From: Mobula hypostoma
Lineage: Eukaryota
Length of the DNA stretch: 64,000 nucleotides
Assembly (NCBI RefSeq): GCF_963921235.1
Contig: NC_086110.1
Location: 13,206,001-13,270,000, forward strand
Direction: 5' to 3'
Part shown: one piece after another, positions 1,286-61,071 of the stretch
Numbering within the stretch: position 1 is the first letter of the stretch
Layout: every line of letters begins with the position of its first letter
Made by a program: the position numbers and the translations under genes
Notes under the pieces: generated by a model
Told to the model about the DNA's origin: nothing
The model's database searches: none
Seen by the model: only the letters and a program-made list of their open reading frames with translations

Positions 1286-1527
1286 AGGTGTCACGGCGTA
1301 TTTCGCATCTTGGCCCCCGAAGAACAATGTTTCTATTCGAAGTGTGTGTGTATGGTTGAGCAACAATAAACAGAACATGAAACTGAAAGGATTTATTAAA
1401 TACTGGTTAATACTGGCGGGTAACTAATTTGATAGTTGAACGTCATGCTAGTTGGAGGGGAGATAAGGGAAGTTACCTGTACTGATATGGATTGAAAATA
1501 CTCAATATAACTATGATTTTACTCAAG

Positions 1528-1821
1528 CTCCTCCAACTCCATTGGAAATTGTTCCTGTTGGAGGGTTTTCGTTTCCTCGAAAGCTCCTTTGTAAAACGGC
1601 TGCCTTCTACCCGGAGGAACTAGAAATCGTTTGGCAAAGAAATAACAAGCAAATTCGCACTGGAATAGAGAGTGTGAAAAACCGAAGCGTGGATGGCTTG
1701 TTCGAAGCTTTTCGTTTATTGGAATTCACGCAGTCTACTTGGGAAAAAGATGTTTACACCTGCCTGGTGTCGCATGGCTCCCTCACGGTGCCTGCCAGTT
1801 TCCGCTTCGTCCAGGACCAAG
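1528..1821 (+). CDS. Gene A, Ig C1-set domain exon (phase 1-1)
   Basis: tcaag|CT...CAAG|gtaaga; 294 nt; xPPTPLEIVPVGGFSFPRKLLCKTAAFYPEELEIVWQRNN...VYTCLVSHGSLTVPASFRFVQDQ; C1 hallmarks CxxxxFYP, W, YxCxVxH; paralogous to 47140-47436. Confidence 0.93.
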
Positions 1822-2428
1822 GTAAGATAGTGTCTTGATGAAGTCATGATGTTGGATCTCGGCCTTAAACGTCGACATTTTAGATCTGCCTGATCGGCTG
1901 AATTCCTCCATTTTATGTGTTATTCTGAATTTCAGCATGTCCAGAATCTTCTGTGCTCAATGTAAATGGAAGTCTTTACAAGTCATAGTTTGTGGGTTAA
2001 ATGTGACCTTGTTAAGAACAGTAACTGAACAGCTACCCAAACACGGAAGAATGACTAATTTTGAAGTTTAGTAATTGACAGGGAATATTAAACGTGAACG
2101 GTGTTCAAAAGTTAAAGTGTTATTCCCGTCGGTGTTAATCGTGTAGGAAGAATCAAGAAATTGAATTCCTGCAATATTTGTAAGATAGCAAACGTTTGAA
2201 CATTTGCTAAAAATATGACAAAGCAAAACTTAAACTCTAAAAGACATAGTAATATAACAAAGGTGAGAATATGCATTTCGTATCTTACGATATATTTCCC
2301 GATCGTGTGTACTGAGATTTGAAACGAGCCTGTAAAATATTTTGGATTGTTGATTCTCATGTGTGCATTTGTTTTTAGATGAAGAAATGCTTCATAGTTT
2401 CTTGTTTTTCCCCCTATTGATCCACAAG

Positions 2429-2527
2429 GCGCTGATACTAAATTGATTCTCTCATATACACTGAAGGGATTGGCAATTTTAGCACTGATAATGGTTTTGG
2501 TGACAGTCAACTTCAAGAGATCGCACG
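2429..2527 (+). CDS. Gene A, transmembrane exon with intramembrane Lys
   Basis: Pyrimidine tract + cacaag|GC...CACG|gtaaga; phase 1-1; GADTKLILSYTLKGLAILALIMVLVTVNFKRSH; aligns without gaps to the gene B TM exon over the TM segment. Confidence 0.85.
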
Positions 2528-3124
2528 GTAAGAACGATGATCGCTGAGAAACATCACCACTATTCGTCCAAACAGATGCGTTAATGATATTTAACTGCAA
2601 AAGAGTAAATGCCCTTTACAAAATGACTGGACATGGATTGCGATTTTCGAAGTCAGACTCAGTGATAATACTCAGTTACAATAGAAGGTAGATCTTAAAA
2701 TTCAACTATTTCATCAGTCCACTCGAAGTATTACACATCTCATTCACAAATGCTTTTCTATGATTTTGGAGTTCTTCAACTGTTTTAAGTGCAATGGCAG
2801 ATCTATACTTTGAAGCGTAAAGAACACTGTCGAGCTCGTGCATGTCTCATTGATTTTAATTTCCATTTGAGCGACAGTATTTAAGTGTAGTACGGCCACT
2901 GATATACTATTATCACTTTATAGCTTCGTTAAAAGTCAAAGTTTATTGAGCATAATGCCATGAGGTTGACGCGGAACACACTGTATTCGGACAATTGATA
3001 TCACCAAATGCTTTCTGAAATATCCGTACCTTGCGCAGTTCGTCTTACACAATGAATTCGATTCGTATCAAACGAATAAAGTCCAATTTTTACAATACAA
3101 ATAATTTATTTTATTTTTCTTAAG

Positions 3125-3168: not shown

Positions 3169-5234
3169 GTAGGTGAACTGGATCGTCTTCTTTCAGAGCC
3201 ATGTATACGCATAGTAGAGATATTATAAATTTATTTTGTTCCACAACATTTTGGAATGCAGTAGGGAAGAATGAAACCATTCTGTCTGACGACTTTTTTT
3301 ATTTTGAAGTATATATCCAAGATGTATTTGAATATTCCTGTTGAATATGCTTCAAATCGTCTTTGAGGATTTAACACCAGTTCATAACCGGTTGCATTAA
3401 GGTGCACGGTAATAGTAACTAATGGAAGTTAAGCTGTTACTCATACTTCGTGTGACGAATAATTAAATACAAATCTAAGACTAGGATGTTTTAGATGTAA
3501 AATGTCGGTTTACGAGAATTGCGATGTAGTGGCAATCGGAAAATACAGTACACGCACGAATCATTTCGCAATATATGTTACATTTGATTTGAACGCACAG
3601 TAAGCAAGATTAAAAATGCAATGAAATCTTGCTTTGGAACGTAATATGCAGTTTTTAACCCCGATTCCCAACAAAGATTCACACAGCAGTGCATAACCTG
3701 CAATGTAATCGAATATGCTTCCAATTAAATCTTGTACTATCTGGTGCACAATGATACCCAAGCGAAACTCCACAATACACCTTCTACTCCACGGGGCTAC
3801 GCTGAACGATGATCATCCTCAATTTGGAAAGAAATGCCTGAAACATATAAATGTATTGTCATCTCCCATTTTGGATTCAAACCAGATATTAAAAACCTAT
3901 AACGACATCTTTGGAGGGAGAAATAGTTGTTCCTTCAGATTGAACCCCCTTCCCCAGAAAGCAACGTAAATGTTAGCTGTTTCTCTTTGCTCTCGTGTTT
4001 CCTGATCCACCGTAAGTTTTATTTATTGATAAATAAAGCATATTCAAATTTCAAATTTACAGCAGTTTAATGTTATTAAATTTGTCCCACCGGGATTCTC
4101 CTAACAGCATATATTAAATATTTATCGGTTGTATACCCATCTGTCTATAACTGGAAACGTCTTCTTGTGTTCCATTAATCGCCTTCCCAATTTTAGCACA
4201 TATTTTTACTTTTACGTAACAATAGCTGCTGCAGCAACTTTTCACATCACCAAAACAAGAATGTCATATATAATACTGGTTTTATTATAGTAGAATTCCG
4301 TAAGTACTTTCATCAGTGTTCGTAGCACTTCCTGGAATGAAGGACTGCTAATGCGAGTAATACCTAAGTTGAAGCTAGAACATTCAAGATAACATTTTTA
4401 CTGTTGTTGTATTGCTCTGGTATGCTATGTCATTGTTTCAGCCAAAACAAATGCTATTTTAACTATTTACTTTAACGGGCATGTCCAACTGCTCTAATTA
4501 TTTCAATCGTAGTTTAATTGATGCATTAGTAAAACCAATCACCTCAACAGCGGGCAAGATGCCTCTCCCATATTTGCTGCCTTAATTACGTAAGTACATC
4601 AGGTCTTGCCATTTGTTTCAAGGTTCATAACTTAAATAATGCGAGCTTTAAGGGTCAGAGGTTCGAATTGCACCGAGGGGACGAAATCTGGTCATGCCAA
4701 TCATTACAATTATTTGACGGGGTGTGTAAGGGAAACGGATCGGATAAAACCCATGCAAAAAAAAACTTAGAGGATCGTAACTACAGATATGACAAAAAAA
4801 AAAGAAACAAAAGAGATGGCCAGAACTGAGAAACGCCTCGATAGATAGGAAGGTTTTAACTGGTTTGGAAATCTAATGTACACATAGCGATTTCCCGCCT
4901 GAAATGGATTTGGTATCCCACTCCTATAAGATATGCGGACAATATTTTTGTGCGCAGCCAAAATGTTACTCCAACCATTTAAAATGCTTTTCTATGATTA
5001 CATGTTCCGAATCGAACTTAGTTCATGGTCACTGACCTCTGTAATCGTTAGCAGTATTAAATGTGTTTTCTCTAGCAGGCTGAACAAGGAGCGGTTGAGC
5101 ACGCCACTGCTTATAATTCACTAAATATGAGGGAGAGCACAGGATTTCGCAAAGATCGACAACAAGAAGTGCGCATTATCTAATCTCAGGTAACGCCGAC
5201 AGATTAGCTTGAATAACATGAATTTGGTTTTGAA

Positions 5235-6820: not shown

Positions 6821-7466
6821 AACCCTCGAGATTATCTTTTTTCCATTGCTTTTACGAATTTAATTTCATATGTTATGTGCAAACGAGGAAACACTAAAAA
6901 GCATGAAACTAGATATAGCCATCCTTTCCAACGCCTATTACCAGCTCCATAATGGACATGAATAACTGATCCAACCGAACTTTGGTGTTATTCATGGAAA
7001 TATCGAACAGTGACAAAACAGTAACCATACGGCATGGATCATGACAGTGTCTGTGAGCATTTGGAGTTCTGCAGGAAACACCCGGAAGATCTCTTGACTG
7101 AAACGTTTGCGGCAATCAGACACATATAACACAAAAAAATGCGCTTGCATTTTGAGGTAGAGAAATATTTTGTACTATACCTGTTTAAGGAGTTACCTAC
7201 TCTCCCAAGTCGATTTTGTTAAAATTTATTTCAAGTAAGGAAAGAAACGCTTATATTTCAGTGGGACGACACAGGTTCTTGGAGTTGAAATACCACATGA
7301 ATCAAAAAGCAAAATTTTGAAAAAAAAGGCATAAACTTTGTGTAAAGTGGCAGACACCTAAAATTGAAAACTTATTAGTGCATAACTAATTTATTTTATA
7401 ATTTTTGTTTCAATTTGTCAACTCGATGATTGTCGATTAACCACTAATTTCAAATTATTTTCACAG

Positions 7467-7598
7467 ACTAAAAGAAATGGAGCTGACGATCTGGCTTACG
7501 CCGCTCTGCAGCTTCCCGATTCCAAGAACACCTCAGCAGCCGAACATCAAAACCAACATATATTGTATACAGATGTAAATGCATCAAGGAAACTGTGA
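7467..7598 (+). CDS. Gene A, terminal cytoplasmic exon with two ITIMs
   Basis: ttattttcacag|ACT...TGA; TKRNGADDLAYAALQLPDSKNTSAAEHQNQHILYTDVNASRKL*; LAYAAL and ILYTDV both fit (I/V/L/S)xYxx(L/V/I). Confidence 0.82.
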   Translation, partial: TKRNGADDLAYAALQLPDSKNTSAAEHQNQHILYTDVNASRKL

Positions 7599-22704: not shown

Positions 22705-23650
22705 ATAGGACTGTTATAAGCGGTGATTTGAAAATCACCGCAACTTTTCGCAACTCGCCACATTCAACATGACCCCACCACTAAGCACATCTTTCCCTCT
22801 CCACCCTCTCTGCTTTCCGCCGGGACCACTCCCTCCGCGACTCCCTGGTCCACACGTCCCTCTCCATGGATTTCCCACCCGGCACTTATCCCTGGAAGCC
22901 GACGTGCTACACCTGTCCTTACACCTCCCCTCTTGCCGCAATTCAGGGCCCCAAACAGTCCTTCCAGGTGAGGCAACACTTCACTTGTGAGTCTGTTGTG
23001 GTCATCTATTGCATCCGGTGCTCCTGGTGCGGCCTCTCTACATTGGTGAAACCCGACGCAGACTGCGGGACCGCTTTGTCGAGCACCTCCGCTCCATCCG
23101 CCACAACAGACAGTATCTCAGTTGCCAGCCACTTCAACTCTGCTTCACGTTGCCATTCGGTTATGTCCATACATGGCCTTCTCCACTGCCGTGATGAGGC
23201 TAAACTCAGACTGGAGGAGCAACACCTCAGATACCGCCTGGGTAGTCTCCAGCCCCTTGGTATGAACATTGAATTCTCCAACTTCCGGCAATTCCCTCCC
23301 CCTTCTGTCCCCCATCCCAGTTTCACTCTGACCCCTCCCCCAGCTGCCTATCAGCTCCCTCATGGTTCCTTCTCCTTCTACTACCTATTGTGCATTCCCT
23401 TATACCTTCGTTACCTTTCCTACCTATTCCCTCCCTGCTTCGCCTCCCCAACCCCTTTATCTTTCCCCTTACTGGTTTATCGCCTGGCACCTAGCAGCCT
23501 TCTCCTTCCCACTTTCCACCTTCCCACCTTATTTAGAGGGCCTCTGCCCCTTCCCTCTTCAGTCCTGATGAAGAGTTCCGTTGTGAAACTTTGACTGATC
23601 CTTTCCACGGATGCTGCCCGACCTGCTGAGTTCATCCAGCGTTGCTTTGC
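22705..23650 (+). mobile_element. Penelope-like element 3' part (GIY-YIG endonuclease + pLTR)
   Basis: ORFs 22866-23594 and 23009-23194: VIYCIRC, LYIGETRRRL, GMNIEFSNFR. Confidence 0.9.
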
Positions 23651-23777
23651 TTTGAAAATCTAAACATAAAGACTTCCAGCCTGAAACCGTCGAGATCCCA
23701 TCTCCGGTATAATGTATGGACTTTTTTATTGTGCGCAGACAAAATGTTAATCCAACAATTTGTTTATCCTTGTTGTC

Positions 23778-24483
23778 CTCTGACCCCTGTTTCCATCCAG
23801 GGGGTCAGTGTGGACATGGTGGAGGACTGCAAATACCTGGAGATACGAATTGACAATAAACTGGACTGGTCAAAGAACACTGAGGCTGTCTACAAGAAGG
23901 GTCAGAGCCGTCTCTATTTCCTGAGGAAACGGAGGTCCTTTAACATCTGTCGGACGATGCTGAGGATGTTCTACGAGTCTGTGGTGGCCAGTGTTATCAT
24001 GTTTGCTGTTGTGTGCTGGGGCAGCAGACTGAGGATAGCAGACACCAACAGAATCAACAAACTCATTCATAAGGCCAGGGATGTTGTGGGGATGGAACTG
24101 GACTCTCTCGCGGTGGTATCTGAAAAGCCGATGCTGTCTAAGTTGCATGACATCTTGGTCATAGTCTCCCATCCGCTACATAATGTACTAGGTGGACACA
24201 GGAGTACATTCAGCCAGATACTCATTCCACCGAGATGCAATACAGAGCGTCATAGGAAGTCATTCCTGCCTGTGGCCATCAAACTTTAAAACTTCTCCCT
24301 GGCACGGTCAGGCACCCTGAGCCAATAGGTTGGTCCTGGACTTATTTCATAATTTACTGGCATAATTTACATATTACTATTTAACTATTTATGGTTCTAT
24401 TACTATTTATTATTTATGGTGCAACTGTAACGAAAACCAGTTTCCGCCGGGATCAATGACGTATGAATATGACTATGACTATG
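23778..24483 (+). mobile_element. Rex1/Babar non-LTR retrotransposon 3' fragment
   Basis: RLYFLRK, MFYESVVASV, SHPLH, RKSFLPVAIKL; (ATGACT)n tail; smaller pieces at ~26800-27125 and ~51590-51745. Confidence 0.85.
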
Positions 24484-24840
24484 GTTTAGGTTTTACAACT
24501 CTAAGTTAGTTTATGATCACTTCGCTAACCTGAACCACAGGGAGAGCAAACCATTTCGCAAAGATCGACAACAGGTGGACCGCGTTATCTATTCCCAGAT
24601 AAAGCAGAGAGATTAGGGTGAATATGATACAGATTTTAATTAGAGATATACCACGGTAACAGACCCTTCCGGTGCATCTAGTCCTTGCCGCTCAGTCACA
24701 CCCATGTGACTAATTGACCTCCTAACCTGAACGTCTATTGAATGTGGGAGGAAATCGGAGTACCCCAGGAGGCTCATGTTTATATATATAATCATCATCC
24801 AAGAGGAAATTAGTTTTACAAAATTGAGGATACCGAACGT

Positions 24841-31574: not shown

Positions 31575-33450
31575 AGAACATAAAAACGGACTGTAAAAGC
31601 TTTTATAGATATGTAAAAAGGAAAAGACTGGTAAAGACAAATGTAGGTCCCCTGCAGACAGAAACAGGTGAATTGATTATGGGGAGCAAGGACATGGCAG
31701 ACCAATTGAATAATTACTTTGGTTCTGTCTTCACTAAGGAGGACATAAATAAACTTCCAGAAATAGTAAGGGACAGAAGGTCCAGTGAGATGGAGGAACT
31801 GAGTGAAATACATGTTAGTAGGGAAGTGGTGTTAGGTAAATTGAAGGGATTGAAGGCAGATAAATCCCCAGTGCCAGATGGTCTGCATCCTAGAGTGCTT
31901 ACGGAAGTAGCCCAAGAAATAGTGGATGCATTAGTGATAATTTTTTTCAAAACTCGTTAGATTCTGGACTAGTTCCTGAGGATTGGAGGGTGGCTAATGT
32001 AACCCCACTTTTTAAAAAAGGAGGGAAAGAGGCACCGGGGAATTATAGACCGGTTAGCCTAACGTCGGTGGTGGGGAAACTGCTGGAGTCAGTTATCAAG
32101 GATGTGATAACAGCACATTTGGAAAGCGGTGAAAAGATTGGACAAAGTCAGCATGGATTTGTGAAAGGAAAATCATGTCTGACGAATCTCATAGAATTTT
32201 TTGAGGATGTAACTAGTAGAGTGGATAGGGGAGAACCAGTGGATGTGGTATATTTGGATTTTCAAAAGGCTTTTGACAAGGTCCCACATAGGAGATTAGT
32301 GTGCAAACTTAAAGCACACGGTATTGGGGGTAAGGTATTGTGTGGATGGAGAATTGGTTAGCAGACAGGAAGCAAAGAGTGGGAATAAACTGGACCTTTT
32401 CAGAATGGCAGGCGGTGACTAGTGGGGTACCGCAAGGCTCAGTGCTGGGACCCCAGTTGTTTACAATAAATATTAATGACTTGGATGAGGGAATTAAATG
32501 CAGCATCTCCAAGTTTGCGGATGACACGAAGCTGGGTGGCAGTGTTAGCAGTGAGGAGGATGCTAAGAGGATGCAGAGTGACTTGGATAGGTTGGGTGAG
32601 TGGGCAAACTCATGGCAGATGCAATTTAATGTGGATAAATGTGAAGTTATCCACTTTGGTGGCAAAAATAGGAAAACAGATTATTATCTGAATGGTGGCC
32701 GATTAGGAAAAGGGGAGGTGCAACGAGACCTGGGTGTCATTATACACCAGTCATTGAAAGTGGGCATGCAGATACAGCAGGCGGTGAAAAAGGCGAATGG
32801 TATGCTGGCATTTATAGCGAGAGGATTCGAGTACAGGAGCAGGGAGGTACTACTGCAGTTGTACAAGGCCTTGGTGAGACCACACCTGGAGTATTGTGTG
32901 CAGTTTTGGTCCCCTAATCTGAGGAAAGACATCTTTGCCATAGAGGGAGTACAAAGAAGGTTCACCAGATTGATTCCTGGGATGGCAGGACTTTCATATG
33001 AAGAAAGACTGGATGAACTGGGCTTGTACTCGTTGGAATTTAGAAGATTGAGGGGGGATCTGATTGAAACGTATAAGTTCCTAAAGGGATTGGACAGGCC
33101 AGATGTAGGAAGATTGTTCCCGATGTTGGGGAAGTCCAGAACGAGGGGTCACAGTTTGAGGATAGAGGGGAAGCCATTTAGGACCGAGATTAGGAAAAAC
33201 TTCTTCACACAGAGAGTGGTGAATCTGTGGAATTCTCTGCCACAGGAAACCGTTGAGGCCAGTTCATTGGCTATGTTTAAGAGGGAGTTAGATATGGCCC
33301 TTGTGGCTACAGGGGTCAGGGGGTATGGAGGGAAGGCTGGGGCGGGGTTCTGAGTTGGATGATCAGCCATGATCATAATAAATGGCGGTGCAGGCTCGGA
33401 GGGCCGAATGGCCTACTCCTGCACCTATTTTCTATGTTTCTATGTTTCTA
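31575..33450 (+). mobile_element. Young 5'-truncated CR1 LINE
   Basis: ORFs 31990-32361 and 32340-33353 ([16 protein letters not shown]); (TTCTATGT)n tail. Confidence 0.95.
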
Positions 33451-38039: not shown

Positions 38040-38830
38040 TTCATCACATCCATCCAGGGCCACCAACAGTGAGGCAAAACCTCCCCTGCGAATCGGCTAG
38101 GGTAGTATTCTGTAGCCAGAGCTACCGATGCGGCCTTCTCTACATGGGTGGGACTCGGCGTAAACTGGGGACAAGTTTTTCAAGCCCCTCCAGTTCATCC
38201 CAAATTGCGGAATTTGCTAGTGGCCAATTGTTTTTATTCCTACCCATTCAAGTTCTGACATGTCCGTTCATGTCCTCTTCTACGTCTTCATGAGGTTACC
38301 CTCTGGGTGCGCGAGCAACACTTCCGGATTCAGTTTAGGTAGCCTCCAACCTGACGACATGAACATCGACTTCTCCTTCAGGTATTTTTCCCTCCCATGT
38401 CTCTCTTCTGTTCCCACCTCTGTGCTCTTATCTTCTCTGCTCTCCTGCCTATAACTTTCACTTCTGTCCCACTTCCATCCCTTTCTCCAGTAGTCTACTC
38501 TCTTCTCCTAATAGATTCCTTACTCTCCAGCTCTTTGCATTTTCAGCCTCTTAGCTCCCAGCTTCTTACTTCATCCCACCGCTCAACTGCACACGCTCCA
38601 CTCCGCCTCCTCTAAGCACACTCAAACTCGCTTCACCTATCACCTTTTAATTTACCTTTCTTCTCACCGCCTTTTTATTCTGGATTCTTCCCTCCTCCTT
38701 TCCTGTCCTAATGTAGCGTCTCGGACCGAAACGTGGACCGTTGATTAATTTCCATAGATGCTGCCTGATCCGCAAAGTTCACCTTGTGTGTGTTATCCTG
38801 GATTTCCAGTGTTTGCAGAATCTTTTGTGC
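38040..38830 (+). mobile_element. Degenerate Penelope 3' end
   Basis: LYMGGTRRKLG; LGSLQPDDMNIDFS; decayed pLTR. Confidence 0.75.
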
Positions 38831-39748: not shown

Positions 39749-41031
39749 AACTGAAGGAAGAGTGAGTAAGGGATTTGAAAGCTGGAGGGGGAGGGGGAGA
39801 TGCAAAATGATAGGAGAAGACCGGAGGGGGAGGGATGGAGCCGAGAGCTGGACAGGTGATAGGCAGAAGGGGATACGAGAGGATCATGGGACAGGAGGTC
39901 CGGGAAGAAAGACGGGGGGGGGTGACCCAGAGGATGGGCAAGAGTTATATTCAGAGGGACAGAGGGAGAAAAAGGAGAGTGAGAGAAAGAATGTGTGCAT
40001 TAAAAAGAGTAACAGATGGGGTACGAGGGGGAGGTGGGGCCTAGCGGAAGTTAGAGAAGTCAATGTTCATGCCATCAGGTTGGAGGCTACCCATACGGAA
40101 TATAAGGTGTTGTTCCTCCAACCTGAGTGTGGCTTCATCTTTACAGTAGAGGAGGCCGTGGATAGACATGTCAGAATGGGAATGGGATGTGGAATTAAAA
40201 TGTGTGGCCACTGGGAGATCCTGCTTTCTCTGGCGGACAGAGCGTAGATGTTCAGCAAAGCGGTCTCCCAGTCTGCGTCGGGTCTCACCAATATATAAAA
40301 CGCCACATCGGGAGCACCGGACGCAGTATATCACCCCAGTCGACGCACAGGTGAAGTGATGCCTCACCTGGAAGGACTGCTTGGGGCCCTGAATGGTGGT
40401 AAGGGAGGAAGTGTAAGGGCATGTGTAGCACTTGTTCCGCTTACACGGATAAGTGCCAGGAGGGAGATCAGTGGGGAGGGATGGGGGGGACGAATGGACA
40501 AGGGAGTTGTGTAGGGAGCGATCCCTGCGGAATGCAGAGAGAGGGGGGGGGGGAGGGAAAGATATGCTTAGTGGTGGGATCCCGTTGGAGGTGGCGGAAG
40601 TTACGGAGAATAATATGTTGGACCCGGAGGCTGGTGGGGTGGTAGGTGAGGACCAGGGGAACCCTATTCCTAGTGGGGTGGTGGGAGGATGGAGTGAGAG
40701 CAGATGTACGTGAAATGGGGGAGATGCGTTTAAGAGCAGAGTTGATAGTGGAGGAAGGGAAGCCCCTTTCTTTAAAAAATGAAGACATCTCCCTCGTCCT
40801 AGAATGAAAAGCCTCATCCTGAGAGCAGATGCGGCGGAGACGGAGGAATTGCGAGACGGGGGTGGCGTTTTTCTTCCCGGACCTCCTGTCCCATGATCCT
40901 CTCGTATCCCCTTCTGCCTATCACCTGTCCAGCTCTCGGCTCCATCCCTCCCCCTCCGGTCTTCTCCTATCATTTTGCATCTCCCCCTCCCCCTCCAGCT
41001 TTCAAATCCCTTACTCACTCTTCCTTCAGTT

Positions 41032-41067
41032 AGTCCTGACGAAGGGTCTCGGCCTGAAACGTCGACT
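41032..41067 (+). ncRNA. Minimal hammerhead ribozyme motif (Penelope type)
   Basis: Stem I AGTC/GACT, core CTGACGA, stem II AGG/CCT, GAAAC, GTC cleavage triplet. Confidence 0.75.
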
Positions 41068-44000
41068 GCGCTTCTTCCTATAGATGCTGCCTGGCCTGCT
41101 GCGTTCACCAGCAACTTTGATGTAAGTTGCTTGAATTTCCAGCATCTGCAGAATTCCTGTTATTTGCTGTAATTTCTGTTTTCGTTTTTGGAGAATTTGG
41201 GAAGTTTTTAATTCTACCAAAACAAATAAATCAGAGACAGGGTGAGAAGAGGAATAGTCCAGATAGTTGTGAGAGTCAGTAGGCTTATAGTAGACATCAG
41301 TGGATAAGCTGTCTCCAGAGACAGAGACAGAAAGATCTAGAAAGGGGAGGGAGGTGTCAGAAATGGACCAGGTAAACCTGAGGGCAGGGTGAAAGTTGGA
41401 GGCAAAGTTAATAAAGTCAACGAGTTCTGCATGCGTGCAGGAAGCAGCGCCAATGCAGTCGTCGATGTAGCGAAGGAAAAGTGGGGGACAGATACCAGAA
41501 TAGGCACGGAACATAGATTGTTCCACAAACCCAACAAAAAGGCAGGCATAGCTAGGACCCATACGGGTGCCCATAGCTACACCTTTAGTTTGGAGGAAAT
41601 GGGAGGAGCAAAAGGAGAAATTATTAAGAGTAAGGACTAATTCTGCTAGACGGAGCAGAGTGGTGGTAGAGGGGAACTGATTAGGTCTGGAATCCAAAAA
41701 GAAGCGTAGAGCTTTGAGACCTTCCTGATGGGGGATGGAAGTATATAGGGACTGGACATCCATGGTGAAAATAAAGCGGTGGGGGCCAGGGAACTTAAAA
41801 TCATCGAAAAGTTTAAGAGCGTGAGAAGTGTCACGAACATAGGTCGGAAGGGATTGAACAAGGGGTGATAAAACAGTGTCGAGGTATGCAGAAACGAGTT
41901 CGGTGGGGCAGGAGCAAGCTGAGACAATAGGTCGGCCAGGACAGGCAGGTTTGTGGATCTTGGGTAGGAGGTAGAAACGGGAAGTGCGGGGTGTGGGAAC
42001 TATAAGGTTGGTAGCAGTGGATGGGAGATCCCCTGAGCGGATAAAGTCGTTGATAGTGTGGGAGACAATGGCCTGGTGCTCCTTAGTGGGGTCACGATCG
42101 AGGGGTAAATAAGAGGAGGTATCCGCGAGTTGTCGCTGTGCCTCGGCAAGGTAGAGGTCAGTACGCCAGACTACAACAGCACAGAAATTACAGATTACCT
42201 TTTTTTTTAACTCCAAAGTAATGTTTTTTCTTAGTTATTGGCACTTTGAAACAGATCAAACACCGGTTTTAGCAGTGATTACATTTCAATTAACAAGCAT
42301 TTGAGGATTTAAATACAGTCTGGCCAATATCTGTAAGGTGTATTTTAAACTGATAACACATCTGTACTTTGTTTTACCCTAGAGTGTGATTCTCATTATT
42401 CCCTTCTATTAACCAATACGAGAATATTGCTCTCACCTCCAAAAATCAGGTTGGTATTTTTTCACATTTTTTTACTTCAATGCTTGGTCAATCTACTGTG
42501 CAATTCCTGCCCTGGTTTAACTAACCAAAGCACAACTCTTCGCAAATGTCCGAGTTATATTCTATCTGCAATTGCTTGCCCTACTTTCGCAGTTTATTGT
42601 CGCAGTTATCTTTCAGTCTAATATACCACCAATTTCGTTGCACTCCGAAATATATTACCGAAGTTAAAAGATATTTTCATCTGAATATTTTGGAGATGAC
42701 AAACAATACTAGAACTGGAACCTACCTGTTCAGTACACCACTAGTTGCAAGCGGTCATTCTTGATATCAAATTTCCACTGTCACCGTCTGACTCCCTCTA
42801 CAAAACCAACGTTGTGTTCTTGTGCTCAGGTGGCTGGTTCACCCTGGCTCCCGTGTCATCTAGTTTTCTATGGAGGCCTGCCAGACGGGACCTTGCAATT
42901 CCAGTTGCTGCACTCAGCAATTTTCTTCATCGCCTCTTCAAAACAACGCAATCAACTTTGTGAGTTGAGATTCCAAATTATATATCCATTTTACGGTCAC
43001 TATTTCAACCTTTGTCTTTCCAAATTGTGATAGATTCTCTCTCTCCAATCCCCTGCAGTATCTTTTCACGCACCGATGTTGGGATCGCCAACTTCAACTC
43101 TCCTCTTGTCCTTGCAAATCTTCTTAAATAAATGCACATTTGTCACTCTCCAATGCTGCCGTAATACAGTCCTAGTTAATGACGATACTGATATCTTTGA
43201 AGTAGGCCTTACAATTTCTCCTCTAGCTTCTCACAATGTCAAAAGATACACTTGATTAGGTGCCGTCTGTTCATCACATGGACTGTATTTTTACACCGCG
43301 AGCACCCCGTTCCCCCCACGCTTCCGTTTTTTTCATGTGCATCTGTTAGAAAATAATCCCCCCCCCCCCCACCTTAATCCCTTACGATCCCTGATTTTTA
43401 ACACAGTGATGGGAAATAATAATTTACAGCCGGGTAATTGCGATTTCTCGGTGGCTATTTCCCCATTTCCTCTTGCTTTATATTCAGAAGTTGTATCATG
43501 CTAGCTGTGTGCTCTCATGATTTCATTCAGGTGCACTATAATAGAGCTTAATCTCGGGAATTGCTTGAACCCGTTTCCTATGGATGAGGCAGATGTCCTT
43601 TCTTCGAAACATTGTTTCAATGTCCTCGTGAACCGCAATTCTCTAATCCTGTTTGCCTTGCCATTCTCTCCACCAGTATCACTTATGCATATTAGCGGCA
43701 TTTAATAGAGGGCATCGCCTTGAAATAACAGAGCAAGAATAAATGAGGTTTTCGAAGCAGGTACATCACGCAGTGCTACAAGAGAGTGTTGATTTAATCA
43801 CAAGAGTAAAGGGCATTCAAACATGCCCACTAAGAGGCAAAAAAGTGCGGTGTAGTCCACGTCCGATCATATAGAATTATGATCAATACAGACATTATTG
43901 GTTGGAAGGCATTTTCCAGTGCTGTACTTGAATTACTTAACGGTTATGATTAAACAACTTGCTCTAGCTTATATCGTTTATAAGCAGTGAATCGGGAAGG

Positions 44001-44631: not shown

Positions 44632-44686
44632 ATGTCGTTGGATGCAAACGTTTGGTGTTTGGCTCTTCTCGCCGCGTTTTGGCCAG
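44632..44686 (+). CDS. Gene B, leader (signal peptide) exon
   Basis: ATG...CCAG|gtacgc; MSLDANVWCLALLAAFWP, phase 1; in frame with the V exon. Confidence 0.8.
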
Positions 44687-44860: not shown

Positions 44861-45166
44861 CCGCAAAAGTGACTTCGGCCAAAGTGGAACAATTCCCTCC
44901 AATCTTAAACGTCCCAATCGGTGGAAATGAATCCATGTTCTGCAAATTTCCAATATTACAAGATACTGCTGAAGTTTCGTGGTGGAAGTCGGGTCAGAAG
45001 GCACTTATAGAACCAGACAGCAGAAATCAGTTCAATGTGAAGAAAGGCAGGGGGACATTTACCCTCCTGAATGTGAGATATGCGGACGCCGGCTTGTATT
45101 ACTGTCAAGTGAAAAGTCAACAACAAATATTCGGAAATGGAAATGGCTCTCAGCTTATTGTGTTAA
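44861..45166 (+). CDS. Gene B, single-exon VJ-type Ig variable domain (NKp30/NCR3-like spacing)
   Basis: gctttctcag|CC...TTAA|gtaagt; 306 nt; MFC...SWW...DAGLYYCQVKSQQQIFGNGNGSQLIVL. Confidence 0.95.
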
Positions 45167-45924
45167 GTAAGTGTCTTTATTCCTGGAAGTAGAAAATTTT
45201 CATCGCTTTGCATTTTAGCAAAAGCAAGATTGCGGAAATGTTGTGAAATGGTATTAAGATTAATGCTGGTTTAGGATTTGTGCAACTAGTATGCTTTATA
45301 CCTTTCAAAAAAGAAAAAAAATATCATTTTGGCCTTTTTTTCGGATTGTTCTGTTTATTACTTCGATGTGCTTCTGGAGATTGGTTTTTGCTCCACTTAT
45401 TATTTGGACCGTTACTATTTCCAACCATATCTTTGTTATGCCTATATTCCTACACAACGCCCCACCCTGTGCCGCCTTGACCTATTGCTCAACGAGCCCT
45501 AACAACTTTAAACAATCAAAAGCTTTAAACAGCGGATGAACTGAACCACTGAATTTTTAGACGACGAGTTTGATTCGGGTTAGCTCATTCGATATAGGGA
45601 GCTGTGGACAAGTTGCGTTGAAAGCAAATCACAAGCCAACGAAGTCAAAGCGAAGCATTGTCGAGGTTAAACGACATTCGCCCATTCTTCATCCCGCTTT
45701 TATACATATCGACGTATTTCGCCGATTTCGTTCCAGTAATTGCTTAAACGCATAGCTACAAATATTTATAAGTAATTAATAAACATCGTTCAGTCTGCCA
45801 AACACTCGAAGAACTTTTGCGGAACGGTGAACATCGAAACACCGTAATCAACGGTTCGGTAAATTCACTGAGGAACATATTCACCTTCCATCTGAAGCCC
45901 AAAAGCAAACAAAGCCACTTCATT

Positions 45925-46710
45925 AATATAACCATGTAACCATATAACAATTACAGCAAGGAAACAGGCCATCTCGGCCCTTCTAGTCCGTGCCGAACTC
46001 TTACTCTCACCTAGTCCCATCAACCTGCACGCAGCCCATATCCTCCATTCCTTTCCTGTCCATATAGCTGTCCAATTTAACTTTAAACAACACCGAAACT
46101 GCCTCAAAAACTTCTGGTGGAAGCTCGTTCCACACGGCTACCACTCTCTAAGTAAAGTAGTTACCCCTCATGTTACCCCTAAACTTTTGCCCTTTAACTC
46201 TGAACTCATGTCCTCTTGTTCGAATCTCCCCCACTCTCAATGGAAAAAGCCTATCCACGTCAACTCTATCTATCTCCCTCATAATTTTAAATACCTCTAT
46301 CAAGTCCCCCACCCCCCGCCTCAACCTTCTACGTTCCAAAGAATAAAGATCCAACTTGTTCAACCTTTCTCTGTAACTTAGGTGAAAATTCTAATAATTT
46401 TGCTCTGTACTCTCTCTATTCTGTTGACAACTTTCCTATAATTCGGTAATCAAAACTGTACACAACACTCCAAATTTGGCCTCACCAATGCCTTGAATAA
46501 TTTCAACATTACATCCCAACTCCTATACTCAATGCTCTGATTAATAAAGGCCAGCATACCAAAAGCTTTCTTCACCACCCTATCCACATGTGATTCCACC
46601 TTCAGCGAGCTATACACTATTCCTAGAATCCTCTGTTCTATTGCATTCTTCAATGCCCTACCATTTACCATGCATGTCCTATTTTGATTAATCCTGCCAA
46701 AATGTAACAA
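45925..46710 (-). mobile_element. CR1 3' fragment in the V-C1 intron
   Basis: Minus ORFs LYSLERRRL and KAFGMLAFI. Confidence 0.85.
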
Positions 46711-47139
46711 TAACGGGACGTATGTGTAAAACCTCTACAGTGAGAAACAAAGCTTGCTCCGTCTGCTGCTCCACAATGCCGATCCCATTGAAACCAGCAT
46801 AGTTATGCAGATTCACTGACTCTCATTTTGCGTTAATACAAAATTGAGCAATGAAGAGGCAGAAGTTGGAACAAATATTGTCTGTTTGAAGAAGAAATGA
46901 AGTCAATCCCAGCACGCGCTAAGTCTGCCGCGTTCATTCCAAACAGCTGTGCGTTCCCCACCTGACACCAGCACATCTATGTTGTCATGTTTATTTGCCT
47001 ACTGAAACAATTAATAACTGACAAATTCATGCGATTTCAAACCACCGCAATGATAGCATTGAGAGTGGTAGCTTAAAACAGAGAATACGTTCGATCAAAT
47101 AATAGCTAAATATTCTACGTCGGTGTTATTATTTTGTAG

Positions 47140-47436
47140 CTCCGCCGACTCCTCTGAAAATCATTCGTGTTGAAGAAGGATCACCTAAATCCCGGAAACT
47201 CATGTGTAAAACTGCAGCATTTTATCCTAAGAAATTAGACGTCTTTTGGCGAAAGAATAATATGGAAATTCTCACCAAAATAGAAACGTCAATACATGAG
47301 ATTTCAGAAGGATTTTATGAGGCTTCCAGTACTTTGGAAGATGCGCAGCCTGCTCAGGGAAAAATGGTTTACACCTGTCTGGTAACTCACGAAACGCTCC
47401 AAGTTCCTGCCAGTTTCAGCTATATTATCGAAGAAG
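47140..47436 (+). CDS. Gene B, Ig C1-set domain exon
   Basis: attttgtag|CT...GAAG|gtaaga; 297 nt; PPTPLKII...CKTAAFYPKKLDVFW...VYTCLVTHETLQVPASFSYIIEE. Confidence 0.95.
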
Positions 47437-47629: not shown

Positions 47630-50600
47630 AGGAAAGAGATCATGATGAGGGATTTTGAGCAGCTAGGGACTAACCTGAAAAGCATAATCGAAAAAAGAGG
47701 TAATGTCTAGATTACTGCCTGAGCTACGTGCAAATTGGCACAGGGTTAATAAGGTTAGACAGTTAAATGCGTAGCTCAGAAATTGGAGTGGGAGATGTGG
47801 GGTTGAATTCATGGGAATCTGGCACCAGTATTGAGGGAGCTGCTTCATTCGGACGGGCTCCACCTGAACCGTGATGGGACCTGCATCCTGGTGAATCACT
47901 TAACTAGGGTTGTGGATAGGGTTTTTAAAGTATGTAGCATGGGGGTTGGTTCATTAGATTGGAGAAGTATGGATAAAATAAAAGTGAAAAGTGTGGATAA
48001 CGATAAAGTAAAAGCAAAAGATAAAAAAGAGAAAAGTGAGGGTAGAATGCAGAAAAGTAAAGCACATAAAAGACAAAGATCACTAGATTTTAAAGGCACA
48101 ATGCCTGTAAGGGCATTTTATCTGAATGCTCGTGCTATCCGGAACAAGGAGAGTGAACTTGTGGCACAAATCAGTATAAGAGCGTATGATTTAGTGGCCT
48201 ATACAGAACCGTGGTTGCAGAATGGATATAACTGGGAATTAAATACCCAAGGATATCCGGTGATACGGGAGGATAGGCAGGAAGGTAAGGGAGGTGGGGA
48301 AGCGCCCTAAATTAAAGATGAGAGCAGGGCGATAGAGAGAGACAATATAAGATCTCAGGAGCAGAATGTTGAATCCGCCTGGGTAGAGATTAGGAATAGT
48401 AAAGTGAAAACAAACGTTGGTGGGAATTGTCTATAGGCCACCGAATAACACAATTACAGTGGCACGGGCAATAATCCGAGAAATATCAGAGACATGTAAG
48501 AATGGAATAGTAGGTATCGTGGACTTTAACTTGCACATGGATTAGGTGAATCAAGTTGGTCGAGGCAGTCTTGAGGAGGACTTGTGAGAATCGAAACATG
48601 CTAGCTTTCTTCAACAGCATGTTGCTGAACCTACAAGGGAACATGCTATCTTGCATCTAGCGCTGCGAAATGAGACAACTAAAATTACCAATCTTGTCGT
48701 TGGGGATCCTCTTGGAAAGAGTGATCACAGCATGACTTTCTTATACACATGTAGGGCGCAATAATTCGATCTAACACCAGTATATTATACCTACGAGGGC
48801 GACAACAAAAATGATGAGAGAAGAGATGTATAATGTCAATTGGGAATACAGGCTATATGGTGGGACGTTTGAAGAACAGTGGAATACTTTCCAAGAGATT
48901 CTTCACGATGCTCAATAGCAGTATATTCCAGTTAAAAGCAAGGACAGTAAGTGCGGGGAGAGCCAGCCTTGGATAATGAGGAAATTAAACGATAGACAAT
49001 AGACCATAAGTGCAGGATTAGGCCATTCGACCCTTCGAGCCAGGACCGCCATTCACTGTGATCATGGCTGATCATCCACAATCAGTATCCAATACTTGTC
49101 TTATCCCCATAACACTTTGATTCCGCTATCTTTAAGAGCTCTATCCATCTCTTTCTTGAAAGCATCCAGAGACTTGGCCTCAACAGCCTTCTGGGGCAGA
49201 GCATTCCATACATCCACCACTCTCTGGATGAAAACGTTTTCCCTGAACTCCGTTCTAAATGGCCTACCCCTTATTCTTAAACTGTGGCCTCTAGTTCTGG
49301 ACTCATCCATCAGCGGGAACATGCTTCCTGCCTCCAGCGTGTCCAATCCCTTAATAATCTTATATGTTTCAATAAGGTTCCCTCCCAGCCTTCTAAATTC
49401 CAGAGTATACAAGTCCAGTCGCTCTAATCTTTCGACATATGACAGTCCCGCCAACCCGGGAATTAACTTTGTAAACCTACGCTGCACTCTCTCAATAGCA
49501 AGAATGTCCTTCCTCAAATTTGGAGACATAAACTGCACACAGTACTCCAGGTGTGGTCTCACCAGGGCCCTGTACAGCTGCAGAGGGATCTTTGCTCCTA
49601 TACTCAATTTCCCTTGTTATGAAGGCCAGCATGCCATTAGCTTTCTTCACAGCCTGCTGTACTTGCATGCTTGCTTTCAATGACTGATGTACAAGAACAC
49701 CTAGATCTCGCTGTACTTCCCCTTTTCCTAACTTGACTCCATTTAGATAATAATCTGCCTTCCTGTTCTTACAACGAATGTGGACAACCTCATATTTATC
49801 CACATTAAACTGCATCTGCCCACTCACCCAGCCTGTCCAAGTCACCCTGCATTCTCATAACATCCTCCTCACATTTCACACTGCCAGCCAGCTTTATGTC
49901 ATCGGCAAATTTTCTTATGTTACTTTTAATTCCCTCATCTGAATCATTAATATATATTGTAAACAGCTGCGGTCCCAGCACTGAACCCTGCGGTACCCCA
50001 CTGGTCACCGCCTGCTATTCTGAAAGGGACACATTAATCGCTACTCTTTGTTTTCTGTCAGCCAGCTAATTTTCAATCCATGTCAGTACTCTGCCCCCAA
50101 TACCATGTGTCCTAATTTTGCCCACTAATCTCCTATGTGGGACTTTATCAAAGGCTTTCTAACAGTCCAGGTACATTACATACACTGGCTCTCCCATGTC
50201 GATTTTCATAGTTACATGAAGGCATCAAAGAAGGCATCAAACTAAATGCTAGTGCGTAGAAAGTGACCACGAGTAGTGGGAAACTGGAAGACTGGGAAAA
50301 CTTTAAAAAGCAACAAAGAACCACTTAGCAAGAAATGAAGAAAGGGAGGATAGATGATGAAAGTAAACCAGTATAAAATATTAAAACGGACAGTCAAAGT
50401 TTGAATAATTATATAAAGCGGTGTCCAAAGTGAACGTAGGTCCCTTGGAGGACGAGAAGGGGAATTGATATTGGATAATGAGCAATTGGCCGAGGCTTTG
50501 AATGACTATTTTGTGTCGGGTTTCACCGTGGAGGACACGCCTAACGTGCCGAAGAGAGATGCTATGGATGCAATGGGAGGTGAGAACCTCGATACAATAG

Positions 50601-54250: not shown

Positions 54251-54353
54251 AAGACAGGAATAAACCTTTGATTCTTGGATGTGCATTGGGCGGAGTGGCA
54301 ATTGTAATTCTGATTATAATTTTGGTAACAAGCGGAGTTAAGAGAAAACGGTG
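54251..54353 (+). CDS. Gene B, uncharged transmembrane exon ending in phase 2
   Basis: T-rich tract + gtccag|AA...CGGTG|gtaaga; EDRNKPLILGCALGGVAIVILIIILVTSGVKRKR; an alternative in-frame acceptor at 54222-54223 is possible. Confidence 0.85.
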
Positions 54354-54876
54354 GTAAGAACATGAATGATTTGACAAGTATTTCAATTTATTACCTCTAC
54401 AGAATGAAAAGAGAGATGATAATGAAAGAGTCAAGATTTCCAAGACATTACCCAGTTCATATTGGTCAATACTAATTATAAATAACAATATAATTTTACA
54501 TTCCCGTTCAAGTTATCCGATCATCCCTTGCACCTACGATTTTCAGTCACTTGGGGTTTTCAGGCCGTGACTTCCAGCGGCGAATTTACACAAGTAATAA
54601 TAATCTTTCTGCTGTAGGTTCGTTGTTTTGAGATATAACATGGCTGATACTATGATGCCACCACTCTGGCCTTTCAATCAAAATCTATATCCACCACATT
54701 CATTAAGGGTCATGCACAACACATTTCATGGCCACAATGTGCGCTGATACTATTTTGAATATCTGTCAAGAGTTGCAACTTTCGTCAAGAAATATGATTG
54801 CAATCCAATACGCAACTTTAAATTTTCTACCATTACCGCTATTATTTAAGTTGTTGTATAATTTTAAACCCATTAG

Positions 54877-59040: not shown

Positions 59041-59084
59041 GTATGTTCAGATACATAGAAAAAAACATTGACAAATGTATTCTA

Positions 59085-60636
59085 TATACCTTAACGAGGT
59101 GGTTTTAGAAATCTTGGACGCATTGGTAATCACTTTCCAATGTTCTATAGATTCAGGATCAGTTCCTGTGGATTGGAGGGTGGCTAATATTGTGCCACTT
59201 TTCAAGAAAAGAGGGAGAGAGAAAACGGGGAATTATAGACCGGTTAGTTTGACGTCAGGAGTGGGAAAGATACTGGAGTCAATTATAAAAGATGAAATTA
59301 CTACACATTTTGATAGCAGTAACAGGATAGGTCCGAGTCAGCATGCATTTACGAAGGGGAAATCGTGCTTGTCTAATCTTCTGGAATTTTTTGAGGATGT
59401 AGCTATGAAAATGGACAAGGCAGAGCCAGTGGATGTATTGTACCTGGACTTTCAGAAAGCCTTTGATAAAGATCCACATAGGAGATTAGTGGGCAAAATT
59501 AAGGCACATTATATTGGGGGCAGAGTACTGACATGGATTGAAAATTGGCTGGCTGACAGGAAACAAAGAGTAGCGATTAACCGGTCGCTTTCGGAATGGC
59601 AGGCGGTGAGCAGTGGGGTACCACACCGTTTAGAGCTGGGACCGCAGCTGTTTACAATATATATTAATGATTTAGGAAAGGGTATTAAAAGTAAAATTAG
59701 CAAATTTGCGGATGACACAAAGCTGGGTGGCAGCTTTGAAATGTGAGGAGGATGTTATGATAATGCAGGGTGACTTGGACAGGCTGGGTGAGTGGGCAGA
59801 TGCATGGCAGGTGCAGTTTAATGTGGATAGATGTGAGGTTATCCACTTTGGTGGTAAGAACAGGAAGGCAGATAATTATCTAAATGGAATCAAGTTAGGA
59901 AAAGGGGAAGTACAACCAGATAGAGGTGTACTTGCACATCAGTCAGTGAAAGCAAGCATGCAGGTACAGCAGGCAGTGAAGAAAGCTAATGGCATGCTGG
60001 CCTTCATAACAAGGAGAATTGAATATAGGAGCAAAGAGGTCCTTCTGCAGCTGTACAGAGCCCTAGTGAGACCACACCCTGAGTATTGTGTGCAGTTTTG
60101 GTTTCCAAATTTGAGGAAGGACATTCTTGCTATTGAGGAGTGAAACTTAGATTCACAAGGTTAATACCCGGGATGGCGGGACTGTCATATGTTGAAATAT
60201 TGGAGCGACTGGGCTTGTATACACTGAAATTTAGAAGGATGAGGGGAGATCTGATTGAAACATATAGTATTATTAAGGGATTGGACACGTTGGAAACGCT
60301 GAAGGTAGGAAACATGTTCCCGCTGATGGGTGAGTCCATAACCAGAGGCAACAGTCTAAGAATAAGGGGTAGGCCATTTAGAATGGAGTTGAGGAAAAAC
60401 TTTTTCACCCAGAGAGTGCTGGATATGTGGAATGCTCTGCCCCAGAAGGCAATGGAGGCCAAGTCTCTAGATGCTTTCAAGAAAGAGATGGATAGAGCTC
60501 TTAAAGATAACGGAATCAAAGGTTATTGGGATAATTGAGGAACTGGATACTGATTGTGGATGATCAGGCATGATTACAGTGAATGGCGGTACTGGCTCGA
60601 AGGGCCGAATGGCCTACTCGTGCACCTATTGTCTGT
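59085..60636 (+). mobile_element. 5'-truncated CR1 LINE
   Basis: ORFs 59075-59746, 59706-60143 and 60140-60538 with RT motifs. Confidence 0.92.
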
Positions 60637-60952: not shown

Positions 60953-61071
60953 AATGCTCAAGCTTTAGAATCGAAACACGGACGTTGCAGAACAACATGA
61001 GAAACTTTTATTTCGGAGGAAGAGGATTCGAAGTCACTTATTTTAGCATTGAGCCATTGTCTGTAACCTAG
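60953..61071 (+). CDS. Tentative terminal exon of gene B with ITIM-like VTYFSI
   Basis: Strong acceptor ctttacttttttgtctttgcag; phase-1 frame open to TAG at 61069-61071; AATAAA at 61086-61091. Confidence 0.35.

Follow-up and report, generated by a model that had tools for sequence, protein, structure and literature searches.

The exon studied here is most probably the V exon of an expressed, non-rearranging receptor gene that encodes a leader, a joined VJ-type domain, a C1 domain, a TM segment and a short tail, and whose product is a molecule of the SIRP/PRARP kind. As part of the same reading, the gene is very probably not an orthologue of NKp30, the receptor with which an earlier note on this DNA had linked it. 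The exon lies in a stretch of 64,000 nt that was analysed as a whole (the window; Mobula hypostoma, lesser devil ray, assembly GCF_963921235.1, contig NC_086110.1, positions 13,206,001-13,270,000, forward strand). The gene that contains the exon is referred to as gene B, and an upstream paralogue in the same window as gene A; the features of both are listed in Table 1.

The V and J-like parts of the exon are contiguous and in one frame, and the peptide quoted in the earlier note is present in a single exon whose borders are exactly those given there. The exon is preceded by ctttctcag and followed by gtaagt, with phase 1 at both ends, and the 101 residues of the V domain are read once the last base of the leader exon is added. 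Both cysteines, with 53 residues between them, lie in the usual Ig contexts, and the exon ends in YYCQVKSQQQIFGNGNGSQLIVL. Pfam matched the exon product to Ig_3 (1.1e-7), I-set (5e-7) and V-set (6.7e-7); the last of these extends over residues 55-101 and takes in the J part. No heptamer-spacer-nonamer signal (RSS) was found anywhere in the 64-kb window, which bears out the claim that none separates the V and J-like parts; the nearest bare CACAGTG is more than 1.4 kb from the exon, and the window total of 7, against 8.2 expected, is at chance level. The two sequons that had been pointed out, NES and NGS, are likewise both there. Structure prediction, which had been proposed as a check, gave an AlphaFold model of the V domain with a pLDDT of 90.5 and a V fold. 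Its strands are A, A', B, C, C' (a single residue), D, E, F and G, with C'' absent; a non-strand break at residues 93-95 lies between strands 88-92 and 96-100.

The exon is spliced into a gene with an intact leader and an intact C1 exon. The leader exon is a 100% match to residues 1-18 of the RefSeq model P0194. The VJ exon had been described as fused to a C1 domain; a true C1-set domain is indeed joined to it, but by splicing and not within the same exon, since the C1-set match falls on a separate exon 2 kb downstream. The PDB matches of the C1 exon included Ig C, UrIg2, MR1 alpha3 and SIRP. Contigs of a public run (X1) carried the GT..AG joints 44686>44861 and 45166>47140 and covered the leader, VJ and C1 exons, while unique intron DNA was uncovered. 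The VJ exon is thus a real spliced exon, and its transcription is read from a run that is only guessed to be RNA. With a difference of about 2-3% from the window, the run X1 contigs may derive from another mobulid or individual. Gene B is already in public annotation under a misleading name: P0194 (M. hypostoma, 258 aa), called 'natural cytotoxicity triggering receptor 3 ligand 1-like' in RefSeq, shows 100% identity to gene B across the leader, V, C1, TM (to 54324) and last exons. The M. birostris orthologue, P0193, has an open frame and is 96% identical in V and 93% in C1.

Table 1. Positions of the features discussed in the text, counted from the first letter of the window.
Feature	Position	Strand	Details
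Leader (signal peptide) exon, gene B	44632..44686	+	MSLDANVWCLALLAAFWP + 1 base; phase 1; donor gtacg
VJ exon, gene B	44861..45166	+	V domain of 101 residues, Cys27-Cys81, J-like G strand
Sequon N-E-S	44926..44934	+	Just before B strand; family consensus at this site is N-V-T
J-like motif	45127..45162	+	IFGNGNGSQLIV; from alignment of the family
Sequon N-G-S	45142..45150	+	Two residues beyond the family's usual N-G-[ST]
High-copy repeat in V-C1 intron	45843..46730	.	Summed contig depth 10^3-10^4 vs 0-40 on exons
C1-set constant-domain exon, gene B	47140..47436	+	Phase 1 to phase 1; Pfam C1-set 2.8e-9
Stalk/TM exon, gene B	54251..54353	+	EDRNKPLILGCALGGVAIVILIIIL(VTSGVKRKR); from sequence and paralogue comparison
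Last coding exon of RefSeq model	60953..61000	+	NAQALESKHGRCRTT then stop; 100% tblastn match, 60953-60997
C1 exon, gene A (upstream paralogue)	1527..1826	+	48% identical to gene B C1
TM exon, gene A	2428-2529		Intramembrane Lys
Tail exons, gene A	5079-5180, 7455-7598		Tyrosine motifs AYNSL, LAYAAL, ILYTDV
Long retroelement ORFs	22866-24289, 32340-33353, 40041-42216 (-), 49096-50180, 59075-60143		LINE or Penelope-type reverse transcriptases

Relatives of gene B were sought with an exhaustive HMMER search, in which the V exon returned 517 proteins at E <= 0.001. Among the best 150 of these, the single-V matches whose source was checked all came from rays, sharks and chimaeras. With the members added by word-indexed searches, there are more than 60 single-V matches, all from these three groups, and they belong to a multigene family of cartilaginous fishes, the typical members of which are V-C1-TM proteins with tyrosine-motif (ITIM-like) tails. 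Nearly all members have V, C1 and TM, many with two or three tyrosine motifs in the tail, and most have one C1 domain, a few having two. Many members other than gene B are also short-tailed, so a tyrosine motif in the tail is best treated as a mark of subtype and not as a criterion of membership; the tails of a Narcine relative and of the gene A clade do carry such motifs. Gene B has the family's order of leader, VJ, C1 and TM exons, its phase-1 junctions and the linker PPTPL that opens C1.

On the family V profile, V domains of the family scored 93-140 bits and anything else 58 bits or less. In a V-domain tree, made by a quick search on 106 columns with SH-aLRT as its only support measure and with NCR3, SIRP, PRARP, IgL and TCR sequences left out, gene B (P0194) grouped with its M. 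birostris orthologue, then with P0004 and a Hypanus sequence, and then with Narcine (SH-aLRT 94-97). P0004 is a M. hypostoma paralogue that is 83% identical to gene B. This batoid clade was nested in a chondrichthyan clade (SH-aLRT 91). By tree and by profile score, then, gene B is placed within the family. Word-indexed searches, whose queries were a full-length member and both the full-length and the V-domain profile, recovered cartilaginous-fish proteins only, together with one frog TCR alpha V fragment. Among AlphaFold DB clusters, the sole close one was a bamboo-shark member of the family at 35% identity; the rest were at 21% or below, and no bony-vertebrate V-C1 protein exceeded 21%. Variability among close paralogues was 1.54 bits in the FG loop and about 1.0-1.3 bits elsewhere, a difference so slight that it marks out no clear ligand-binding hot spot or hypervariable loop. 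NCBI names the members variously SIRP-alpha-like, NCR3 ligand 1-like, Ig lambda-1-like, TCR beta-like, tapasin-related-like and PD-L1-like, and we found no description of this chondrichthyan V-C1-TM(-ITIM) family in the accessible literature.

Comparison of whole domains produced a wide field of relatives. Foldseek placed IgNAR V, TCR V beta, CD79b, IgL V, VpreB and PD-1 first when the V model was compared with the PDB, and CD79b first among Swiss-Prot models, where NKp30 stood at ranks 14, 22 and 27. VIA-align gave Z values of 14.7 for NCAM2 Ig1 and IgNAR V, 13.5 for CD79b, 13.0-13.4 for IgL, TCR and PD-1, and 12.7 for NKp30 (46th), which is effectively a tie. Identity in the structural matches to NKp30 was 22-23%, towards the upper end of the values in those lists. 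CD79b and IgNAR V are, like the V domain of gene B, short V domains; they differ from it in having no C1 of this kind and another gene context, and they share 18-25% identity with it, so their position at the top of the structural lists seems to reflect the fold and does not establish kinship. A V-C1 model built on the paralogue P0004 (pLDDT 91.6) found its best PDB matches in antibody light chains (E about 1e-15, 20-25% identity). When whole PDB sequences were ranked with V profiles, titin, contactin and other multi-domain proteins dominated the lists. Beyond the cartilaginous fishes, the V domains closest to those of the family belong to reptile tandem VJ-like ITIM receptors (55-58 bits per domain; hhalign 99.4%), and a profile of these reptile tandem V domains, when compared with the PDB, did not single out NKp30 either. 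The ectodomain is antigen-receptor-like, with VJ and C1, and no known family claims it firmly.

The reptile proteins, P0056, P0075, P0102 and P0112 from turtles, a gecko and a viper, have two to five tandem VJ-like domains. Their J ends read, for example, GNGTGTQVTI or GRGNGTRVTI, their tails contain VTYADL or VVYAEV, and their NCBI names are pIgR-like, titin-like, FcRL5-like and obscurin-like.

Descent is a separate question from architecture. SIRP resembles the family in its non-rearranging VJ-type V domain followed by C1-set domain(s) and TM, in the paired tyrosine inhibitory motifs of the SIRP-alpha tail, and in having inhibitory and tail-less or activating paralogues side by side. PRARP, from bony vertebrates, reportedly has a non-rearranging VJ exon, a V-C1 ectodomain in non-avian species, a TM segment and possibly an ITIM, and its genes are said to occur in pairs; it has the same architecture as the family, the comparison being one of architecture alone and not of sequences. 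Such likenesses would follow if the family were the strict cartilaginous-fish orthologue of SIRP or PRARP by common descent, which we consider possible but rather doubtful. Besides the paired tyrosine motifs in the tails of many paralogues and the name 'SIRP-alpha-like' that NCBI gave automatically to many members, this reading can draw on the full-length V-C1 family profile, which the SIRP-alpha and SIRP-gamma ectodomains matched over V and the first C1 with totals of 101.9 bits (summed over two stretches) and 89.1 bits, respectively. On the same profile, however, a whole light chain reached 87.9 bits in a single stretch, and light chains and UrIg2 score about the same as SIRP; a lambda V-C stretch gave 68.9 bits and a UrIg2 V-C1 stretch 58.6 bits. 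SIRP has two C1 domains, whereas most members of the family have one, and gene B has a single C1 exon between V and TM and no V-C1-C1 order. The V domain of gene B is also short and lacks C'', and the gene has neither an ITIM nor a charged TM residue. SIRP is missing from the top V-domain and F-G lists, and the AlphaFold DB clusters described above likewise speak against a bony-vertebrate orthologue. The relation to SIRP or PRARP is one of architecture only. That PRARP is a VJ gene and that VJ-C1 genes are held to be antigen-receptor precursors (PMC10751288) is in keeping with common descent.

At its 3' end, gene B can be read in two ways. The TM segment, LILGCALGGVAIVILIIIL, is free of charged residues. 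In the RefSeq model an internal donor after 54324 is used, with which the P0194 exon ends in LIIIL and is joined to the exon at 60953, the acceptor of which reads ttttttgtctttgcag. The donor typical of the family, at 54354, leaves phase 2, and reading on through it meets a stop at 54355-54357, after KRKRW. At the end of the TM exon a Hypanus model reads CGG GGT AAG and the ray CGG TGG TAA, a difference that suggests one extra base. With two donors that give different tails, the 3' end is ambiguous. A tyrosine motif is absent from either possible 3' end, and no family tail (ITIM) exon was found from gene B to the end of the window; gene A does have such exons. P0194 and P0193 both end in a TM segment and a short basic tail, and the models of the closest relatives of gene B end in three different ways.

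The out-of-phase family-type donor could mean decay of gene B. The gene would then be a decaying copy that has undergone a one-base phase change in the TM exon and lost its signalling tail, and the VJ exon would be a relic; the stop after KRKRW, the lack of ITIM exons downstream and the three kinds of ending among the closest relatives can all be read in this way. We think this improbable, because the gene has intact, spliced exons for the leader, V and C1, the orthologue in M. birostris has kept an open frame at the identities given above, and both Mobula models retain the TM segment and short basic tail. If gene B is instead an expressed receptor of the kind proposed here, it is probably a non-signalling or partner-dependent counterpart of the inhibitory paralogues and would serve as a decoy or paired receptor, as the lack of ITIM exons in either 3' end and of a charged TM residue would suggest.

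The earlier note had gone further than a V-C1 receptor and, from the spacing of the F and G strands, had proposed a structural intermediate between NCR3-type receptors and TCR/IgL chains. Across the family, the V domain ends with the consensus YYCxV-x(7)-GNG[TS]G[ST]xLxV. The Phe or Trp of Ig and TCR J segments is replaced by Asn in nearly all members, and with Asn at the aromatic position the family does not match the canonical J motif [FW]-G-x-G-T-x-L-x-V. The spacing from Cys to GxG is nearly constant in the alignment of all members and is therefore a family trait. Human NKp30 PDB chains aligned with the F-G part of gene B over 26 on 26 residues (12.5 bits, E about 1.4) and with the family F-G/J profile over 31 on 31 positions (27.5-27.9 bits, E about 1e-5), and the equal lengths imply no net gap. 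The proposed NKp30-type spacing therefore stands as an observation, but it is found throughout the family and is aligned equally well by TCR alpha and light chains. No other non-rearranging receptor reached the first 60 places among 177,635 PDB sequences on the F-G/J profile, yet NKp30 did no better than TCR alpha V-J, which was level with it at 27-32 bits; IgL scored the same as or better than NKp30 on the F-G comparison, light-chain V-J aligning over the same stretch. The 23-residue motif alone matched no Ig-family chain, its only match being a nitrilase at E = 1.

The sequon that adds to the likeness is a derived feature within the family. P0193 and P0194 read GNGNGS where P0004, P0006 and P0012 read GNGSGS, and within the clade of gene B NGS at this site is confined to the two Mobula orthologues, so that its NKp30-like position is due to a derived Ser-to-Asn change in gene B and its M. 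birostris orthologue. One distant chimaera member has GNGNGS independently. On these comparisons the likeness to NKp30 appears to be real but narrow, confined to a short motif that TCR matches equally.

In gene B as in NKp30/NCR3, a VJ-type domain occupies a single exon, GxG follows a non-aromatic residue, Cys and motif are equally far apart, and an N-G-[ST] sequon falls at the matching position. NKp30 is without a C domain, as stated in the earlier note and as fits the human protein of 201 residues with its V domain at 19-128, whereas gene B has a spliced C1-set exon. The NKp30 V domain is longer, with about 68 residues between its cysteines, and NKp30 signals through a charged TM residue, which the TM of gene B lacks. 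The family might be a branch of the NCR3/NKp30 lineage that retained an ancestral C1 and is intermediate to TCR/IgL. The gapless profile alignment, the shared non-aromatic residue and sequon position and the presence of NKp30 among the structural matches are what it has in its favour, and we nevertheless judge it very unlikely: the motif alone is not significant, TCR alpha and IgL are equal or better on the same profile, the matching sequon arose within Mobula, and NKp30 ranked 14th or lower for the whole V domain and 46th by Z (12.7 against 14.7 at the top). The short V domain without C'' and the uncharged TM of gene B also count against it. There is an even slimmer chance that the family is a sister lineage of NCR3 which preserves a pre-RAG state of VJ-C1 membrane receptors, with NKp30 as a derivative that has lost its C1 and with the shared GxGxG[ST]xLxV and the G-strand-bulge glycan as an ancestral mark of an unpaired V domain.

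The proposal of an intermediate is only partly supported. As a description of domains and of the J motif, 'intermediate' is apt, in that gene B combines a non-rearranging VJ domain and a true C1 with a non-canonical J motif; as a statement of descent it is unproven and draws in part on a lineage-specific substitution, and NKp30 was not singled out by whole-domain comparison. VJ-joined genes of the IgSF include CD79, NITR, SIRP, CD8, NKp30 and PRARP, and VJ-C1 genes are also known, while NCR3 is a VJ-only gene (PMC11599192, PMC10751288, PMC12227049). A VJ domain and C1 on a membrane anchor is thus not a new intermediate, being already found in SIRP, PRARP and UrIg/UrIg2 (PMC10751288, PMC11599192, PMC12227049). 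The elasmobranch UrIg/UrIg2 genes have a non-rearranging VJ exon and a split leader, followed by three to eleven C1-type domains, and their products form dimers (PMC12227049). Gene B differs from them in its one C1, its TM and its different J motif. UrIg is reportedly secreted.

Antibody light chains and TCR have the V-C1 ectodomain in common with gene B, light chains being the best structural match; gene B differs from them in that it lacks both an RSS and a separate J segment. That gene B derives from a rearranged IgL/TCR gene, as a processed or germline-joined copy, was rejected and is hardly credible, despite the light-chain matches of the V-C1 model and the automatic names 'Ig lambda-1-like' and 'TCR beta-like' of some members, as light-chain identity is only 20-25%, gene B has its own TM exon, the J motif is without Phe/Trp across the family, the retained introns show that the gene is not processed, and the same exon structure in chimaeras, sharks and rays indicates that the family is old and did not arise by a recent joining event.

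Under the preferred reading, that of an expressed, non-rearranging receptor, the gene B protein would be a type I membrane glycoprotein whose V domain is predicted to bind a ligand. In antibodies and TCRs the region of the G-strand bulge forms the V-V interface, into which the J aromatic residue packs. The Asn that the family has in place of this residue usually lies inside a sequon and would put a glycan at or next to the bulge. With a glycan there, the V domain would be expected to work unpaired, as in NKp30 or SIRP, and not as half of a V-V heterodimer. We think that the V domain does work unpaired, a suggestion that comes from the motif. A homodimer prediction for the gene B ectodomain scored 0.00, a value that counts neither for nor against pairing.

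Non-rearranging VJ-C1 genes serve as models of antigen receptors as they were before the RAG transposon split a V exon, and the family described here is large, old (from chimaeras to rays) and misnamed in public annotation. The exon itself adds little to this, since gene B is already in RefSeq and its NKp30-like detail is largely a lineage-specific substitution on a common VJ-domain motif.

Gene A, the second member of the family in the window, is represented by its C1, TM and tail exons, the V exon falling outside the window, ahead of position 1; the C1 of gene A shares 83% identity with the M. hypostoma model P0026. A tail-like open stretch also stands isolated at 24521-24604 (FANLNHRESKPFRKDRQQVDRVIYSQIK) and shares 71% identity with P0158, a Hypanus model. 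It has no V, C1 or TM exon in its vicinity and may be the relic of a third copy of the family. Long retroelement ORFs fill the intergenic space and the 6.8-kb intron between C1 and TM. The repeat depth over 45843-46730, in the V-C1 intron, was seen in all four runs, from two organisms, and overlaps ORFs at 46148-46710 that resemble reverse transcriptase. The 5' exons of the paralogue model P0004 that match repeats at 38260-38379 and 40053-40169 are spurious.
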